Below, in pieces: positions 18,892 to 62,900 of a DNA stretch of 64,000 bases. This stretch comes from Hyphochytrium catenoides (lineage: Eukaryota; Protista; Hyphochytriomycota). How positions within the stretch are numbered: the stretch's first letter is position 1; every line of letters begins with the position of its first letter. The notes under the pieces were generated by a model that had not been told where the DNA came from, made no database searches, and saw only the letters and a list, made by a program, of their open reading frames with translations. Position numbers and translations under genes: made by a program. The stretch spans positions 62,001-126,000 of the forward strand of contig FLMG01002622.1 in assembly GCA_900088475.1 (NCBI GenBank). Direction: 5' to 3'.

Positions 18892-19373
18892 TCATAGGTG
18901 TTGGTCCTGTCCAGCATAGAGCTCACAGTGTCTGTGGGCTCTTAGAAACTCTAAGAGAGAGAAAGGGGACGCGTCTGCAGGTCCCATGATTATCTCTCTT
19001 TTCTGTCTATCCCATAGAGGGACAGGAATAGGAGAAGAGATCTGTTGATGATGCTCTTCCTCTTCCATTTCTCTCTCGATTTCTGCCTCCATCTCTGCAT
19101 CTGAATCCTCTGCAGCGTCTCGGCGTTCATCTTCTGAATGTAAAGAGAAGATTAGCTAACAAAAAGAAGAGGCTGAAAGAGACAGGAAGAAACAGAGTGG
19201 AAGAAAGAAACATCATAGAGATAGAGAGAGGACAGAGAAGAGAAGAGGGATTAAGCGAGGATACACTGAGACGCGAGAGAAGCCAGACCGAGAGAGAAAA
19301 AAAGAGAGACAAACAAGGCTGGCAGACAATAGCCAACGTGGTCAAAGTTGCGAGGAAGGGAGGAAAAAAACAA

Positions 19374-19410
<37 letters not shown>

Positions 19411-20132
19411 CTACCTCTCTTTCTGATTTTCCACTGGCGATTAAGTGCCAAGAAAGCTGGACAATGAATCAACAAAGGCGCAGCGACTCCAACGAGAAGC
19501 TTTCCCGTCTCTCTCTCTTTCAAGGTCACTCTCTCTCTCAAACCTTTCCCTTCTCTCTGCATCTCTCTCAAGTCTGCGGCTATCTCGTGAAGCTCTGGAT
19601 CATTGGAAGACTCGAGGCGAAGAAGCTCTGTCTCCAGAGCCTCAATATCTTCTCTCTTCTTCCTCTCTTCCATCTCTCTCTCTCTCTCTCTCAAGCCCAA
19701 ATCTCCGAAATTGAGGTGCAGACTTTCCGAATCTAATTCCATGGCAATAACGCTTCCGTACTCTTCCATGTCTCGACCGCCGAAAATTGCTCTTAGCTCC
19801 TCTGTAATTTTCGGGATGAGTGCGGCAGTGCTGGTGTCTGGGCGGAGATCTATCGCCGAGACCAGAGATTTGACCTGCGCGACGAGCATCGGAAGAGAGA
19901 AAGGAAGAAGAGGAATAGAGTCTGGGGACAGAGGAGAAGAGAGAGAGAGAGAGAAAGAGAGAGTGAGAGACAGAGAAAGAGAGAAAGAGAGAGAAAGAAG
20001 GTATTAAGAGAGGGAATTAGGCGCAGACATATAAGAGAAAAAGAGAGAGAGAAAAAAAAAGAGAGAGAAAGAGAGAGAGAGAAGAGAGAGAGAGAGAAGA
20101 GNNNNNNNNNNNNNNNNNNNNNNNNNNNNNNN

Positions 20133-25718: not shown

Positions 25719-28271
25719 TTAGTCTCTTCTCAAGACTCTTCTCCGGCTACCAGCGCCTGCATAACTTCCTTTGTTCGTCGTTGTGGCTGGTCGCACCTGG
25801 GCTGCCTTGGCGCTGGAAGCACTGCTGGCGGCTGACTTTGGCCCTAAGTTCGTGGTCCTGAGTCCATTGCCAGCTCCTCCACTCTGTCCACGGACTGTTT
25901 GAGACTCTCTGGCCGCTCCACCAGCTGCTGACTGTCCGGCACTTGCTCCGCCGCTGTCATAGCCTTGCTCGCCACCGCCGCCAAGCACGCCACTTCCTCC
26001 TCCTTGCCCCGAACCTCCAACCATCCCGGTAAGAGCTTGACCTAAGTTCTGCAGTGGGTTTGCTCCTCCGCCGCCGCCGGCGCCGCCGCCCAGCAGACCA
26101 CCTAAGGCTTGTCCAAGGTTTCCAATGGGGTTACCGTCTCCTCCCCCAGCTCCTCCCCCAGCTCCTCCGCCACCTGTCGCTCCAGCGACAAGGTTGCTGA
26201 CGCCGCTAACTAGAGAACCGATAGCGTCCCCACCGCCGCCGCCACCTGTCGCTCCAGCGACAAGGTTGCTGACGCCGCTAACTAGAGAACCGATAGCGTC
26301 CCCACTGCCTCCGCCCGCAGCTGCGGCTCCGTTAGGATTGGTAGCTTGGATCACTGCATCTGCCAGCCCGGTAGCTAGAGGAGCACCAGCAGTTAGCGCC
26401 GCGCCAATGGGCGCCGCGCCAGGGATAAGAGACAGGACTGGGCCGGCGAGACTTGCGATAGTTCCGGCAGCCTTGGCCGCATTGCCAGCCACGTTAGCTG
26501 CTTGTTTCAAGGCGACCGCGGGGTCCTGAGCCGCCTGGCCTGGAGCGTTAGCAGTCCCAAGATAGCCCTGCTGCCCGTTGCCTCCTTCAGACATGTCACC
26601 GCTTGAAGTTGCTTCAGCTTCTCCCTGTACCTCTCCCTCATTGTACTCTCCTTGGCCCGTTGCCTGGCCGCCCACGGCGTTCTTTGACCGCTGGAAAGCA
26701 CCTGCTCCGGCACTGAGAGCACCGCCGCCTTGCTGCTGATCTGCGTACTCTCCTGTCAGTTCAGCCTGGCTCCCAGTGGCTGGAGAAGGACCTCGAACCG
26801 TCTCAGCAGCTGCGTTGGTTTGCAGTGCCGTGGATCCAGTTGCTGCAGAAAGCGAAGAAGCTTGTCCTCCTCCACCTCCATTGCGTCCACCGAAGAGACC
26901 GGACAAGAGTCCTCCTCCTCCTCCTTGATACCCCCCGAAGTTGATTCCTAGGGCACTCAGGACGTTCTTCTTTAGCTCCACCATCCTGCCCAATAGCCCA
27001 CCAATCCCTGACTGCTCTGGCTGCGGCTGAGGAGCTGGCAGAGAATCAGAGGCAAGCGTCTGCTGTTGTTGCCCAGGTTGGTGCCCGCGTTGATGTTGAC
27101 CCATGTTAGCAGCTCCTGTGCGCTGAAGTTGGTCTACATTCACGCCTCCAGCGGCTCCGGTAGAAATATCTTCAGGCACATTGTCCATGAGTGCTCCAGA
27201 AGCCCCGGCATCGGCTTCTAGGCCAGTGTTCTGCACTTGATGCACAGGGAGAGGCATCTCCTCTCCTTCTAGCGCCGCGCTCTCTCTCTTGACAGCAGAA
27301 GATGTCTCGGTGCGTAAGGAGGGCGAAGAAGGGGTTGGAGACGGAGAGATGATGGCTCTCTGGCTGTGTTCTCTCCTCGCCTGAATCTCCGCTTCCCTCG
27401 TTGTCTCTTCCTCGGACAGCACCTTCTCTTGAACGACAACCTGCGTCTTGGTCTCTGCTGGGCGCTCAGGCTCAATAACATACTCTGTTGCTCTCTCGAG
27501 GTCGCTCCCTTCAGCCACTGCTGTTGAAGCTTCTTCAACCAGCAGCTGCACAGCAGGGCCATTGACCTCCCCAGAGAAAGAGATGCTGTCCACCTGAGAG
27601 TCAGTAGAAGAAGAAGTGGAAGGGCTCTGTCCCTCTACCTCGAGCTGGCTCAGTCTGTCAGGAAGAGACCTTCTGAAATAACTATCGGCATTCACCAGCT
27701 CAGGAAGAGGAGGAAGAGGACCAGTCCCAGCCTTGTAAGGAAGTGTTCCGACCTCTGTCTGGACTGGAGCCCCAGTCTTTGAGGAAGCTGGGACCGTAGG
27801 GACGGTCTCTGAGATCCGTGTCAGAGTCTTGAACAGCGGATCTACGGCCACAATCGCTGCCACTCTGCAGGCTTCTCCACCGTCAGGGCTGGGGCAAGGA
27901 TCTCTTTGAAAGTACTGGACCCAAGCATTCTGCGCCCTCTCAAGATCACGCTGGATGTTCCACTCAATGAGCTTCCGCCAATCTTCTTTATCTTTCTCCG
28001 TCTGCGCATACTTTACGGCTTGGTTGACAGCATCTGCAGGGGCAATTTTCTCCACGTAGCGTGCAGCTTCTCCTCTCCATTGTGCTGCTTGCTCGGGGTT
28101 AGAACGGAGGATGTCATCCCAGGGTGAGCGGAGTTGCTCCTCCGTATAAAGCTGACCAGTGGTAGCGGATGGCGGTGGCCCTCCCATGCTCTGGGCATGG
28201 GTGGCGGCGGGGTGAAGGGAAAGTGCTAAGGTGATGACGGCCAAAACCGCCACGGCTCTAAAAACCTTCAT
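25719..28271 (-). CDS. Intronless 850-aa secreted Gly/Ala/Gln-rich protein of unknown function
   Basis: Long open frame with an N-terminal signal peptide (MKVFRAVAVLAVITLALSLHPAATHA). It contains a near-exact 72-bp tandem repeat (GDAIGSLVSGVSNLVAGATGGGG x2) at ~26167-26305. Confidence 0.85.
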   Translation of the reverse strand: MKVFRAVAVLAVITLALSLHPAATHAQSMGGPPPSATTGQLYTEEQLRSPWDDILRSNPEQAAQWRGEAARYVEKIAPADAVNQAVKYAQTEKDKEDWRKLIEWNIQRDLERAQNAWVQYFQRDPCPSPDGGEACRVAAIVAVDPLFKTLTRISETVPTVPASSKTGAPVQTEVGTLPYKAGTGPLPPLPELVNADSYFRRSLPDRLSQLEVEGQSPSTSSSTDSQVDSISFSGEVNGPAVQLLVEEASTAVAEGSDLERATEYVIEPERPAETKTQVVVQEKVLSEEETTREAEIQARREHSQRAIISPSPTPSSPSLRTETSSAVKRESAALEGEEMPLPVHQVQNTGLEADAGASGALMDNVPEDISTGAAGGVNVDQLQRTGAANMGQHQRGHQPGQQQQTLASDSLPAPQPQPEQSGIGGLLGRMVELKKNVLSALGINFGGYQGGGGGLLSGLFGGRNGGGGGQASSLSAATGSTALQTNAAAETVRGPSPATGSQAELTGEYADQQQGGGALSAGAGAFQRSKNAVGGQATGQGEYNEGEVQGEAEATSSGDMSEGGNGQQGYLGTANAPGQAAQDPAVALKQAANVAGNAAKAAGTIASLAGPVLSLIPGAAPIGAALTAGAPLATGLADAVIQATNPNGAAAAGGGSGDAIGSLVSGVSNLVAGATGGGGGGDAIGSLVSGVSNLVAGATGGGGAGGGAGGGDGNPIGNLGQALGGLLGGGAGGGGGANPLQNLGQALTGMVGGSGQGGGSGVLGGGGEQGYDSGGASAGQSAAGGAARESQTVRGQSGGAGNGLRTTNLGPKSAASSASSAKAAQVRPATTTNKGSYAGAGSRRRVLRRD

Positions 28272-33454: not shown

Positions 33455-33704
33455 ATTGGACACGATGGGCCCTTAATCGTCAATCATTGGCTTAGAAACT
33501 CCTCCTCAACCAATCAGAAAGAAGAGGCTCCCTCTGTCACGACTCACAATCCAATCAAATACTTGACCAATAATTCACATAGGATAAACTGACAAATGGC
33601 AACTTTTCGCCAATTTGACAATGTCAATCATTCATATTTACATATTTACTCCCGTATTCTTCTCCCCGAAGCCTCATATGTGAATTAAGCGGTGAATTGA
33701 TTGG
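33455..33704. promoter_or_regulatory. Cluster of seven CCAAT/ATTGG boxes upstream of the CysH-Grx gene
   Basis: CCAAT or ATTGG at ~33455, 33486, 33510, 33551, 33567, 33610 and 33700, in a microsatellite-free stretch. Confidence 0.45.
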
Positions 33705-34136
33705 TGAATAATGTTAGTTTACACCACCCTTCAACTTATTGGGATATTCCATACATTTTCTATAGTAAACAGCCCACTACTGAGAAAGACAGAGCTGGAA
33801 GACGAAGAAACGAAGCTCATCGAGCTTTTTCTCTCTCATTCTTTGATCTTCAGTCTCTTCCATTGGCTTCCTTCTCCTCCGCGCAGCTCTCACTTCTCGC
33901 GCAGTCTCCCCTGTGTTTATTGGCATAACGGGCAGCTTCGTCTTCATCTCTGGTGGTCTTGGGAGTCTGGCGTCATAAGGCGTTTGGCTCTGCTGATCCC
34001 AAGGAGACTTGTCGCTTCTGCATCGTCTATCTGCCAGTCTCGTCCTTTGCCACATCTTGGTCTCCTGTCTCTCGCTGTCTGTCTCTCCGTGCTCCTGCTT
34101 CTCGATATTTTCTTAGCTATTGGACTGTAATCCATC

Positions 34137-35483
34137 ATGGCCTCGTGCTCAATGGAAGAAGCCAGGGGCGGAGGCTGTGCCATCTATCCGTCTCCACCTC
34201 CTCCTTCCGCAGCTCAGCCTATAGCTGCTGCTCCCTCTCCATCGCCTTCTGAGGATACGTGCCAAAGTGGAGAAAGCGGAGCTTGCAAAATTCAATGGAA
34301 GACGCGACGGAACGCCCCTTCTCCTTCCTCGTCTCCGGCTGCCTTGGCAAATGGACATGGAGCCTCTCAAGAAGAAGAAGAGAGAGAGGCTGAAGAGTGC
34401 ACGGAAGAAGGCTGCGCTCTTGTGAGTGTCGAACCCATAGATCCGAGGCTGGGCGCTCCTCTTCGCCTTATAAATAGCCAGCTCACGCTGAAGAGCCCAG
34501 AAGAGATCATCTTATGGGCTAAGGAAAAGTATGGGGATGGACTCATCCTAACCACGTCATTTGGCATACAATCGGCCGTCATGCTGCACATGGTCACGCG
34601 GCTTATCCCTAACATTCCTGTTGTCTGGGTTGACACTGGCTTTCTCCCTAAAGAAACCTATGTCTTCGCGCAAGAACTTATTGAGAGGCTCAACCTGAAC
34701 ATCAAAGTCTATCAACCGCAGCTTTCTGCTGCTCGTCTGGAAGCTCTGTATGGAAAGCTCTGGGAGGCTGAAGCTCCCGAAATGCATGAGTTATATGGAA
34801 CGATCACCAAGGTGGAGCCGATGAACAGAGCTATTGAGGAGCTTAATGCAACGGCAGTCTTTACGGGTCTTCGAGCTAAACAAACGGATCTTCGGAAGAA
34901 GATGCAGATTGTCAACAAGACAAAAGGGAAAGAGCATAAGGTCTGCCCCATTCTCTCCTGGACCGAGAAGGACGTAGATGAGTATCTCTCTCGACACAAT
35001 CTCCCCTACCATCCTCTGAAAGCTCAGGGCTATGAGACCGTAGGAGATGCACATTCTTCACGCCCTGTCAGAGAGGGAGAAACAGATGTAAGGGCCACGC
35101 GGTTCAATGGTAGAGCGCAAGAGTGTGGCTTGCATCTGAATGTTGACGCTGCAGACGCTGAAAAGGCCGGTGAAGAGAAACAGGGGAAGAACAATGTGGA
35201 CCTAGCGCACATTGAAAGGGCGCAGTCCATCCCTGGGCTGGTGCTTTATACACAGCCAAACTGCAAATTTTGCAAAGCTTCAAAATTGCATCTGAAGAAT
35301 CTGCAGATTGCCTTTTCAGAGTTTGGTGTTGGGGATGAAGTCTCTGTTGAGACTCTCATTGCCCGTATTGGACGCACAGTGACCACTGTGCCGCAGATAT
35401 TTATAGATGGCGAGTACTTGGGAGGGTACAAGGAACTTGTGCAGCGTTTCCCTGCTGAGAAGGAGGAGAAAGAAGATGCTTGA
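34137..35483 (+). CDS. cysH: PAPS/APS reductase of the Fe-S-less CysH type fused to a C-terminal glutaredoxin, with a Cys-pair N-terminal extension (intronless, 448 aa)
   Basis: Motifs TTSFGIQSAVMLH, VDTGFLPKETY, KVEPM, TGLR, PYHPL..QGYETVGD and catalytic ECGLH. The CC and CxxC cluster ligands are absent. The Grx domain has YTQPNCKFC...TVPQIFIDGEYLGGY. An in-frame TAA just upstream fixes the start. Confidence 0.95.
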   Translation: MASCSMEEARGGGCAIYPSPPPPSAAQPIAAAPSPSPSEDTCQSGESGACKIQWKTRRNAPSPSSSPAALANGHGASQEEEEREAEECTEEGCALVSVEPIDPRLGAPLRLINSQLTLKSPEEIILWAKEKYGDGLILTTSFGIQSAVMLHMVTRLIPNIPVVWVDTGFLPKETYVFAQELIERLNLNIKVYQPQLSAARLEALYGKLWEAEAPEMHELYGTITKVEPMNRAIEELNATAVFTGLRAKQTDLRKKMQIVNKTKGKEHKVCPILSWTEKDVDEYLSRHNLPYHPLKAQGYETVGDAHSSRPVREGETDVRATRFNGRAQECGLHLNVDAADAEKAGEEKQGKNNVDLAHIERAQSIPGLVLYTQPNCKFCKASKLHLKNLQIAFSEFGVGDEVSVETLIARIGRTVTTVPQIFIDGEYLGGYKELVQRFPAEKEEKEDA

Positions 35484-59976: not shown

Positions 59977-62900
59977 AGAGCCAACAAGGCCCAGCAATAA
60001 AGCTTTGGACTTGAAAGCGCCAGGGGCCGCTCTGTCTCTCTCTCAACTGGAGAAATGTCTCTCTGCTGCTTCCAAGCTTAGCAAAGATCATAACCCTTTT
60101 CTCTCTAGGCGAAGACGGCCACTTCCCTCTCCTCCTGCACCTTTTCCATCACCTTCGTCTTCTTTCAATGCAGCTGGTCCCCAGTCCTCGGGCTCTGATC
60201 TGCAGAGAGGCTCTCTCTCCTCTTCTTCTGCGCTTACTAGACCGCCACTCTCCCTCGCCCCTTCTCCTCTTCCCCCTTCTTCTTCGTCGCTCTCCCATCC
60301 TTCACCTTTCTCTCCTCCTTCTACCCCGTTTTCGAGGCCCTTAGCGTTGAACCGAAGTAGCTCACAAAGTAAGCGAGAAGATTTTAAACTTGTTCTGTTT
60401 TCTCTCACTCCACCTGCACTCTCTGGTCTCTCTCACCCCTCTCTCTCCTCCTCCCCCACTCTTTTTCTTTCCCCTGTTGCCATCTCCCAGGCTGTTTATA
60501 TCTGTAGCAGTCAGTCTTCTTTATCATAAGCTTACCTCATCTTCTCCCGCACATGGGCGCCTTTTCAACCGCCGACCCTTTGTTTCTTTCTCTCTCTCTG
60601 TCTCTCTCTCTATGTGTCTCTCTCTTTGTCTCTTTTTCTCTCCCCTCTCACACACACACTTCCTTTTTCTTCCTAGCGATCGGTTCAGGACAAAGACCTC
60701 CTCTCCATCCTCCACCAGCGGCGCTACCTTCTCTTACAGCGCAGCAATCTAATAAAAATGCTGCGAAGGTGCATCCAGAGCTTGGGACAGTAAGAAAGAG
60801 ACAAGCTTTCGCTCTTTTTCGTCGTTTTGCTCTTTTCCTACTTTTGCTAGTGTCTCTCTTCTCCGGGCACTACTTCCTCATCATCCTGTCTTGCTTTGTT
60901 CTCCCTTTCTCTCTCTATCCTTATGTGCGTTCCTTGCTAGACTGCTTCATAGCCTTCTTATCTTTTGCCATTCAAATTGTCTTTTTACCCTCCTCCCGCT
61001 TTCTCATCGTTCTCCTCTCTTTTTCTCATTCTCCCTTTTCCTCTCTCTCTCTCTCTCTCTTTGAATCCTCTGTTCGCTCTCTCTCGTTCTGCCTGTTTCC
61101 CCTTTTTTCTGACTGTATCTTACCTCTCTTTGGCGACAGAGATTGGCTCCCGCCCCACGTCTTCCTTGTGATTCTCTCCCTCAGGAGCGCAGCAAGAGCC
61201 ACGATGAAAACTATGAGAGGTGAGGTTCTCGTGCTTGTTTTTCTACGCTTTTTCTCTTTCCCCCTTCTCTCTCTCTCTCTCTCTCCTTTCCTCTCTCTCT
61301 CTCTCTCTCTCTCTCCTGTTGCCCTTGAGCTGTCTAATCTTGTCTACCAATGGCAACGCTGATTAAAGAGTTCCTCCCTCTCTTTGATTCTGTGTTTCCT
61401 TCTCTCTCTATCTCTCTCTTCCTTCAGAGCTCTTCAGGAGTTGGAGTTGGTTCAACGCCAGATTAATGCTGCGAGAGAGGAAGGAGAGCTTCCTCTCTCT
61501 CTTGTCACAAAGAGAAATGCCCTTGAGAGCAAGATTGCAGCGCTAAACAAGCTCAGAAGAAAGGCAGCTCCGCCCTCCCTCTCTCCTTCCTCTTCCTCCT
61601 CCCGCGGCTCTTCTCCTCATGAAGATCCCTCCCTTCCTCCTCCTCCAGCTGTTTCGCTCTCTCACTCTTCTGCCTCATCTTCTTACCAGAAAAACTCATA
61701 CTCAGGTACGGAAAGCGTTTTTGGGCTAGTATTCTCTCTCTCTCTCTCTCTCTTTCTTCCTCTCCCTCTCTCTCTTTTTTTTTCTCCCTCCGTCCCCTGG
61801 TCACTTCCTCTTGCGCTATCCCTCCCTCTCCTTCTCTTCCTCTATCTATCTCTTCTCTCTCTTGGCCGTGGTTGAACACACGCTTTCGCCTGCAACGGGT
61901 TACCTTTGGCAACCTTGCACTCTAATCCCTCTATTTGAGTTTAAACTAAGTCTTTATCCTTCTCTGGCCGTCCCTCCCTCTTCCTTCTCACTTTCTCTCC
62001 TTTGAATCTCTCTCGCTGTCTCTCTTTCTCGCTGCCTTTTCCCCCTTCTCTATATTTCTTACTCTCGCTCTCTACGGCTGTTTTCCTAATCTCGCCAACT
62101 TCTCGGTGCTCTTCTCTCTTTCTTTGCTTCCTTTTTTTCTCTCTCTCTCTCGCGCGCTCGCTCTGTGCACTCACTCTCGCCCTCTTTTTAACTGTTTGTC
62201 GCTCTCTCTGTTTATCCCTAACACGTCAGCGATCACGGAAGAGATGTTGTCCGACGACATTCTCGCCAACTTTGACTGTGATGTCGACTTTCCTCCTCCT
62301 CCAGCCGCGCCCTCGGCTTCTCTCTCTTTCTCTTCACCTCGTCTTTCCTCTTATTTGCCTCCCAGACCACTGTCTGAAGAGAGAGAAGAAGAGAGAGAGA
62401 GAGACGACGACGTTCCTCTCTGTTCTGGCCATGGAGAGCCGTGCATTCTCCTCACTTCGAAGTCCCAACTGAATCCTGGCCGCCAGTTTTATAAGTGCAA
62501 ACATGACAGAAACTCTGGAGAGGCTTGTGACTTTTTTCAATGGGCTGAAGCAGGTGTGAACGGCCACGAAGAGGAGAAGAAGAGAGAGACGGAAGAGAGG
62601 CGGCACGTCTGGACGACCTGGGAGACGGAGACAGAAAGAAAGAGAGAGAGGACAAGTGGGAGAGACCGCTCGAGCAACAAAGAAGGAGGATGATACAGAA
62701 GAAGATGGTGGTTATAACAGAGAGTAATGGAGGTGTCGGACTTGTTCAGAGGGGACCCAGGAAAGAGAGAGAAAGAGAGAGAAAGAGACACACACAATAG
62801 GTTGGCAACCGCGAATCCATTCTCTTCCGCCCTTGCTCACCTCTTGCTCATTCGTTCCTCTCGGCCGTACCTCTGATGATCGACTGCTCTGTCTCGCAGG

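Follow-up and report, generated by a model that had tools for sequence, protein, structure and literature searches.

The open reading frame at positions 34137-35483 (+) of the window, by which we mean the whole 64,000-nucleotide stretch of Hyphochytrium catenoides DNA that was analyzed, is an intronless eukaryotic gene in which a PAPS reductase is followed by a C-terminal dithiol glutaredoxin (Grx), a fusion of the stramenopile/oomycete type, and it is set apart by an N-terminal arm bearing three cysteine pairs. The second of these pairs ends in the residues that close E. coli NrdA, the catalytic subunit of class Ia ribonucleotide reductase (RNR). Our best reading of the arm, proposed tentatively and by analogy, is that its cysteine pairs may act as swinging dithiols that are reduced by redoxins and serve the catalytic Cys330.

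Translation of the window at this locus gives 448 codons and a protein of 448 residues, whose domains are well delineated by profile searches. Pfam places PAPS_reduct at residues 136-310 (170.8 bits for a cutoff of 22.5, E 3.6e-50) and Glutaredoxin at residues 369-427 (39.4 bits for a cutoff of 22.9, E 7e-10). Among the NCBIfam models, NF002537 (phosphoadenylyl-sulfate reductase) is matched with 255.4 bits for a cutoff of 154 and TIGR02057 with 253.0 bits, marginally below its cutoff of 254.2, while the Fe-S-type APS_reductase model TIGR02055 yields only 115 bits for a cutoff of 235 and the plant-type APS reductase model TIGR00424 is a weak match (42 bits versus a cutoff of 553). E. coli CysH (PDB 2o8v, residues 22-245) aligns with residues 110-336 of the query at an E value of 1e-54, and the C-terminal domain matches E. 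coli Grx3 (1fov, 3grx) and displays the Grx hallmarks, namely CKFC at residues 376-379, TVPQIF (the TVP cis-Pro motif) and GGY (the GG motif). Residues E329, C330, G331, and H333 of the catalytic ECGLH motif are invariant across 38 aligned family members. Outside the arm, cysteines are found at positions 270, 330, 376, and 379 and, because C270 is the sole core cysteine besides C330, the CysH core is devoid of an Fe-S motif. The CysH-Grx enzyme is Fe-S-less, with PAPS rather than APS as its putative substrate; APS-using enzymes without Fe-S also exist (APR-B type). An AlphaFold2 model built from a 38-sequence alignment is confident for the CysH core and the Grx domain (pLDDT 90-98, with about 90-96 across residues 361-440 of the latter) and of low confidence for the linker at about residues 333-352. 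Almost no other open reading frame in the window has family support. The features of the locus are collected in Table 1.

Table 1. Features of the CysH-Grx locus, with positions counted in the window
Feature	Position	Strand	Description
Putative promoter and leader	33455..34123	+	11 CCAAT/ATTGG boxes; role putative
In-frame TAA stop	34128..34130	+	9 nt upstream of the start codon, read from the sequence
N-terminal arm	34137..34451	+	residues 1-105, six Cys, predicted disordered, no homolog found
Cys pair 1	34146..34184	+	C4-x9-C14, residues 4-16, CSMEEARGGGCAI
Cys pair 2	34260..34292	+	C42-x7-C50, residues 42-52, (ED)T-CQSGESGACKI
Cys pair 3	34398..34421	+	C88-x4-C93, residues 88-95, (EAEE)CTEEGCAL
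CysH core	34458..35144	+	residues 108-336, Pfam PAPS_reduct 136-310; without Fe-S cysteine motifs
ECGLH motif, catalytic Cys330	35121..35135	+	residues 329-333
Glutaredoxin domain	35241..35417	+	residues 369-427; CKFC at nt 35262-35273, then TVPQ, GG

The closest relatives of the protein are CysH-Grx fusions of oomycetes (Globisporangium, Pythium, Aphanomyces, Phytophthora, and others), which share 48-52% identity with it and are 330-380 residues long, and the next matches are unfused cyanobacterial CysH proteins. In a maximum-likelihood tree, all fusions lie on one side of a branch with 99/96 support, and the query stands on a long branch outside the crown-oomycete clade (98/92). The first-pass annotation had taken the architecture to be undescribed among sulfonucleotide reductases. 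This holds for the arm, since a literature search gave nothing relevant on ESGACKI-type motifs or on N-terminal Cys extensions of PAPS reductase, but not for the CysH-Grx fusion, which was published for oomycetes in 2009 by Morris et al. (PMC2705460), who cite Patron et al. 2008. The novelty is thus limited to the arm, and the arm is known from a single genome.

A comparable arm is present in none of about 40 fusions, in which 40-60 residues with 0-1 Cys precede the SSFGIQ sequence; the query has about 85 residues more than the known fusions, and it is this surplus that carries the three Cys pairs. Longer N-termini do occur in P0094 (a transmembrane segment and a P/S-rich stretch) and in P0005 and P0042 (an extra N-terminal Grx), all unrelated to the arm. 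The Cys pairs, whose conservation in orthologs had been proposed as a check, are missing together with the arm from all detectable orthologs, these being distant relatives only (48-52% identity or less). As the nearest fusions work with short N-termini containing 0-1 Cys, a relay through such an arm is unnecessary for this type of enzyme. Furthermore, searches with the arm alone returned nothing at an E value of 10 or better in a word search of 5.8 billion clustered proteins, and nothing at 1e-3 or better in an exhaustive phmmer search of 1.84 billion cluster representatives. The JGI metagenomes, also queried with the pattern GACKIQWK, gave one distant Grx match and no relative of the arm, a search of the ESM Atlas by features gave no usable match to it, a 25-residue arm peptide had no match in the PDB, and none of the matches in Pfam, NCBIfam, and the PDB extends over the arm. 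This isolation, in every database searched and among all orthologs, is what would be expected if the arm were a neutral, fast-evolving, lineage-specific disordered extension that is translated and has no redox role, its motif having spread by duplication and its ESGACKI being coincidental. We regard this explanation as a real possibility and a close rival of the redox reading.

Both readings presuppose a translated arm, and the arm is probably translated from M1, as judged from the sequence around it. M1 and M6 are the only methionines that precede the conserved core, and the TAA upstream of M1 closes the frame, so that an upstream coding exon cannot run directly into the open reading frame at this point. 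The 11 CCAAT/ATTGG boxes, located between 33455 and 34119, form the densest 840-nt stretch of the window (mean 0.95), and this cluster fits a putative promoter placed directly upstream of the open reading frame. The 423 nt before the start codon (33714-34136) are devoid of ATG, as in 0.5% of shuffles.

Alternatively, the arm or its first part could be an open 5'-UTR or intron, with the protein joining further downstream, for instance at the 3'-splice-site-like CAG at about 34212, a possibility that we hold to be unlikely. The tract ending in this CAG does resemble a strong 3' splice site, the local C/T-rich sequence lowers the number of stop codons, and the 139-codon stretch upstream is likewise open in the same frame except for the TAA; the ATG-free leader gap is merely the 12th longest in the window, 11 longer ones lying elsewhere in this repeat-rich DNA. 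One public RNA run (5% of words shared) gave a single contig of 221 nt, which covers 34592-34812 in the conserved core with 7 differences and no part of the arm. Nevertheless, without the arm the core would have no start codon in the exon, there being no methionine between M6 and the core, and an upstream exon spliced near 34117 would run into a stop in every frame after at most about 120 nt. Moreover, the context of the M1 codon is good (A at -3 and G at +4), the frequency of G at the first codon position is similar in the arm (0.40) and in the core (0.36), and the arm frame is open in just 1.6% of composition-matched shuffles, the other two forward frames having 2-3 stops.

The first 105 residues are rich in Ala, Ser, Glu, and Pro (A16, S15, E14, P14, G8, C6), and AlphaFold2 assigns residues 1-104 a pLDDT of 32-41 with no secondary structure, in agreement with the flexible Pro/Ser/Glu-rich extension of about 100 residues that had been described. 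The three Cys-pair strings reported at the same time are all present in the translated open reading frame. The six cysteines are arranged as Cys4/14, Cys42/50, and Cys88/93, and every pair ends in [G/A]-C-x-[I/L]; Pro-rich linkers lie between the pairs, which are spaced 28 and 38 residues from each other, and the third pair, with its CX4C spacing, lies at about the position where E. coli CysH starts. Docking of the arm onto the enzyme, for which structure prediction had been suggested as a check, does not appear in the AlphaFold2 model obtained with the 38-sequence alignment. An organelle targeting or signal peptide is ruled out by the acidic N-terminus (MASCSMEEAR), and a twin-CX9C fold by the presence of a single CX9C and the lack of predicted helices.

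Cysteine is normally depleted in disordered P/S/E-rich segments. The arm shows instead a 3-4 fold enrichment, and the probability of finding six Cys among 105 residues is about 0.005-0.02 for a local background of about 1.2-1.7% Cys. Once six Cys are given, three tight pairs with 20 residues or more between them have a probability of about 0.013, and at least three [GA]C.[ILV] sites are found in about 1e-4 of shuffled arms. The pattern C.{2,9}[GAS]C[KRSA][ILV] occurs 3 times in the arm, as compared with 12 occurrences in the rest of the six-frame translation of the window (~128,000 residues) and a single one in 36,605 residues of family proteins; at least two copies are present in 1e-4 of shuffled arms. 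The triple motif is therefore above chance and very unlikely by shuffling, though these patterns are post hoc, having been tuned with the arm sequence already in view. As for ESGACKI, its expected count in the arm is about 1e-6 and its per-site probability about 1.2e-9. A single ESGACKI is unsurprising given the volume of protein screened; what is improbable is its conjunction with two echoes in the disordered arm of a Grx-fused, redoxin-dependent reductase.

The units carrying the pairs may have arisen by internal duplication, as their sequences suggest. Their DNA alignment reveals weak similarity only, and the same 19 nt recur after two of the TGC codons, in a different frame each time, which hints at recent and sloppy evolution. 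All three units retain the Cys, Glu, Gly, Cys, and aliphatic residues, the remainder having diverged. If the units are old duplicates, this retention would point to selection on these positions, with three short units as the whole sample. Internal duplication alone could yield repeats without selection.

The likeness to RNR was examined at the C-termini of NrdA proteins. The tail that had been described for E. coli NrdA was found in the genome record of strain K-12, where the nrdA translation ends in ...DDGCESGACKI immediately before the stop, and residues 46-52 of the query (ESGACKI) are identical to its last seven residues (7/7). Nine phage NrdA C-termini, chosen across the range of similarity, read DSDCESGACKI, DSADCAACKL, DDGCDSGACRL, AEDCSACKL, EEGCEGGCKL, DDDCDSCKI, DEGCEGGCKL, QQGCSSGGCSI, and EEDCDSCKV, so that these nine tails and that of E. 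coli share an acidic run, C-x2-4-C, [KRS], [ILV], and the chain end. By comparison, pair 2 (EDT-C-QSG-ESGACKI) is alike but for a 3-residue insertion and its non-terminal position, and pair 3 (EAEE-C-TEEG-C-A-L) but for an Ala at +1 and, again, its non-terminal position, whereas pair 1 has only its G-C-A-I end in common with NrdA. The acidic lead-in is found in pair 2 (ED.T) and pair 3 (EEEEREAEE) and is missing in pair 1. The residue at +1 is Lys in pair 2 alone and Ala in pairs 1 and 3, where the NrdA tails have K, R, or S, and the spacing is CX2-4C in all ten NrdA tails versus CX9C, CX7C, and CX4C in the arm. From the sequence, pairs 2 and 3 resemble internal versions of the NrdA tail motif. 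The possibility that the 3' end of an nrdA gene survives as a fused remnant upstream of cysH was considered and rejected, as the likeness to NrdA extends over about 12 residues at most and the region of the conserved YY motif is absent. The enzyme's own catalytic E-C-G-L-H shares the C-small-aliphatic flavor of the arm motifs.

The biochemistry of the enzyme family offers a framework for the redox reading. The E. coli PAPS reductase works with the single Cys of its ECGLH motif, which belongs to a flexible tail at the C-terminus and is returned to the reduced state by Trx1 or Grx1. The redoxins that can serve PAPS reductase and those that cannot form the same two groups when ribonucleotide reductase is the substrate (PMC5947528). 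In RNR, electrons from Trx or Grx are passed to the active site by a flexible terminal Cys pair (PMC4078304, PMC5704485). By analogy, Cys330 of the query would attack PAPS and be oxidized, as an S-sulfocysteine or a disulfide. The second Cys of an arm pair, in a G/A-C-x-I/L context similar to the catalytic E-C-G-L, would then be the resolving thiol, sulfite leaving as a disulfide forms between the arm and Cys330. The partner Cys would convert it into an intra-pair disulfide and free Cys330, and the arm disulfide could be re-reduced by the fused Grx (CKFC, with GSH) or by free thioredoxin. The presence of three pairs might provide a buffer for several turnovers or a thiol switch tuning activity to the redox state. 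The more specific version, in which the reductase would have acquired the Trx/Grx-docking dithiol motif of RNR threefold at its N-terminus and a self-contained relay would run from GSH to Grx, arm dithiols, and Cys330 and store reducing equivalents for several turnovers, seems doubtful to us; if it held, the NrdA-tail sequence would be a portable short linear motif of redoxin recognition. Orthologs do without the arm, and Cys330 already has a tethered Grx at a distance of about 40 residues, so that the arm, if functional, is more likely accessory than obligatory, for example as an electron buffer, an alternative entry for Trx, or a thiol switch.

In view of the non-random triple motif, a redox role of the arm is plausible at the level of its sequence, and the polypeptide carries its own Grx. 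Several observations speak against this reading. No ortholog or other protein was found with the arm, and Cys330, being itself part of a flexible tail, is already separated from the fused Grx by about 40 residues. The spacings of pairs 1 and 2 (CX9C and CX7C) are unlike NrdA and the motifs are not at a free C-terminus, and the arm is undocked in the AlphaFold2 model with a pLDDT of 32-41. The case for a neutral extension gains from the predicted full disorder and the low-complexity P/S/A/E composition, from the short DNA repeats within the arm, one pair of which lies in different frames, and from the fact that one ESGACKI is expected by chance in the roughly 1e9 residues screened. It has more difficulty with the enrichment of Cys where this residue is normally depleted and with a density of three motifs, sharing the same Cys/Gly/aliphatic columns, per 105 residues versus a background of about 1 per 10,000. 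It also has to accommodate a coincidence that happens to sit in a Grx-bearing enzyme sharing the reductants of RNR.

It is improbable, in our view, that the six Cys bind a metal (Zn, Cu, or an Fe-S cluster), making the arm a structural or oligomerization element or a metal/redox sensor. Six Cys in a paired arrangement would suit such a site, and there is a precedent in the CRD of class II RNR, in which six C-terminal Cys bind Zn and relay electrons (PMC5704485). The pairs of the query are nevertheless spread across Pro-rich linkers with no predicted fold, Pfam, NCBIfam, and PDB give no matches to the arm, and the CX9C, CX7C, and CX4C spacings are unlike classic zinc-ribbon knuckles. To other explanations of the arm we give a very small chance.

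If the arm is redox-active as in the reading that we prefer, the RNR tail motif (acidic run, C...G-C-x-I/L) would be a transferable redoxin-recognition motif and not a peculiarity of RNR. A single polypeptide could then contain a three-stage delivery of electrons to sulfate assimilation, which would make this protein a compact model for swinging-arm thiol relays and its motif a guide in searching for similar arms among other thiol-dependent enzymes. Should the arm be neutral, the lesson is one of caution, since disordered extensions that evolve fast do give rise to striking identities of short motifs.

Among known systems, NrdA and the query both have a flexible terminal segment in which a Gly/Ser-rich loop separates two Cys, the second being followed by K/A and I/L. 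Whereas the NrdA motif is the extreme C-terminus of the RNR catalytic subunit, those of the arm are internal, N-terminal, and in triplicate on a CysH-Grx protein, and a sulfonucleotide reductase, in contrast to NrdA, has no buried active-site disulfide to reach. The CRD of class II RNR is also a terminal six-Cys array that relays electrons to the active site, and between subunits as well (PMC5704485), but it is a folded zinc finger conserved in many NrdJ proteins, whereas the arm is devoid of sequence relatives and of a predicted fold. The FrnE tail cited in the first-pass annotation is borne out by the literature, where the CXXXXC found at the C-terminus of many FrnE proteins is proposed to restore the active site (PMC8945050). 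This tail of a DsbA-family protein is a flexible terminal Cys pair for which external re-reduction has been proposed (PMC8945050), and pair 3 has the same CX4C spacing; FrnE differs from the query by its host enzyme, its single pair, and the C-terminal location of this pair. The oomycete fusions (e.g., Phytophthora sojae Ps156997) and the query share the order CysH then Grx, conserve ECGLH and CK[FY]C, and lack the Fe-S cysteines. Finally, plant-type APS reductase is a sulfonucleotide reductase with a built-in GSH-dependent Trx/Grx-like C-terminal domain; it has Fe-S cluster cysteines, a plastid transit peptide, and no Cys-pair arm, the query being the reverse with regard to both the Fe-S cysteines and the arm.

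Among the approximately 40 oomycete CysH-Grx proteins compared with the Hyphochytrium fusion, seven, all Pythium/Globisporangium-like fusions (P0001, P0002, P0003, P0004, P0017, P0019, and P0032), have one Cys each among residues 1–7. The early Cys of P0001 lies 22 residues ahead of a near-invariant Asn, which corresponds to N113 in our protein, where C93 of the arm precedes it by 20 residues. Such an early Cys may represent a recurrent N-terminal resolving Cys. The arm itself contains a 19-nt direct repeat, the first copy of which begins immediately 3' of a TGC Cys codon and the second 5 nt 3' of such a codon. The reading frame differs between the copies, and this hints at a recent duplication accompanied by a frameshift within the arm.

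The nearest neighbor of the fusion in the CysH tree, albeit with a weak placement, is P0042, a 514-aa protein from a JGI metagenome (contig of 1691 nt) with the domain order Grx-CysH-Grx. Its two Grx domains are near-identical, each starting with MALP.GYVIFSKPNCK.CKAAKALLRK, and P0042 could be either a genuine double-Grx enzyme or the product of tandem gene copies read through. Furthermore, a 221-nt contig from a public sequencing run (X1; probably DNA, 2025, with low coverage) matches the CysH core at 34592–34812 with 7 differences, which indicates that a close strain or sister species is present in public data.

Features of the window discussed in the text
Feature	Position	Strand	Details
BRK domain ORF fragment	19251-19889	-	E 7e-5; 22.9 bits vs Pfam cutoff 23
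850-aa ORF	25719-28271	-	signal-peptide-like N-terminus; Cys 0.2%
CCAAT/ATTGG box cluster	33455-34119		directly upstream of cysH-grx start codon; n=11
19-nt direct repeat, copy 1	34149-34167		84% identity between copies; starts TCAATGGAAGA...
19-nt direct repeat, copy 2	34292-34310		
GRF zinc finger ORF fragment	62106-62693	+	E 2.5e-12

Elsewhere in the window, the nearly Cys-free 850-aa ORF, to which Pfam assigns no family, may encode a secreted orphan protein. The GRF and BRK fragments are probably exons of larger genes. Most of the remaining long ORFs are spurious and arise from (CT)n/(GA)n repeats, translated as SLSLSL. Finally, the CCAAT/ATTGG boxes span ~670 nt, and their density across the whole 64-kb window (mean of 0.95 per 840 nt) peaks in this very cluster, which may constitute an NF-Y-type promoter array for cysH-grx.
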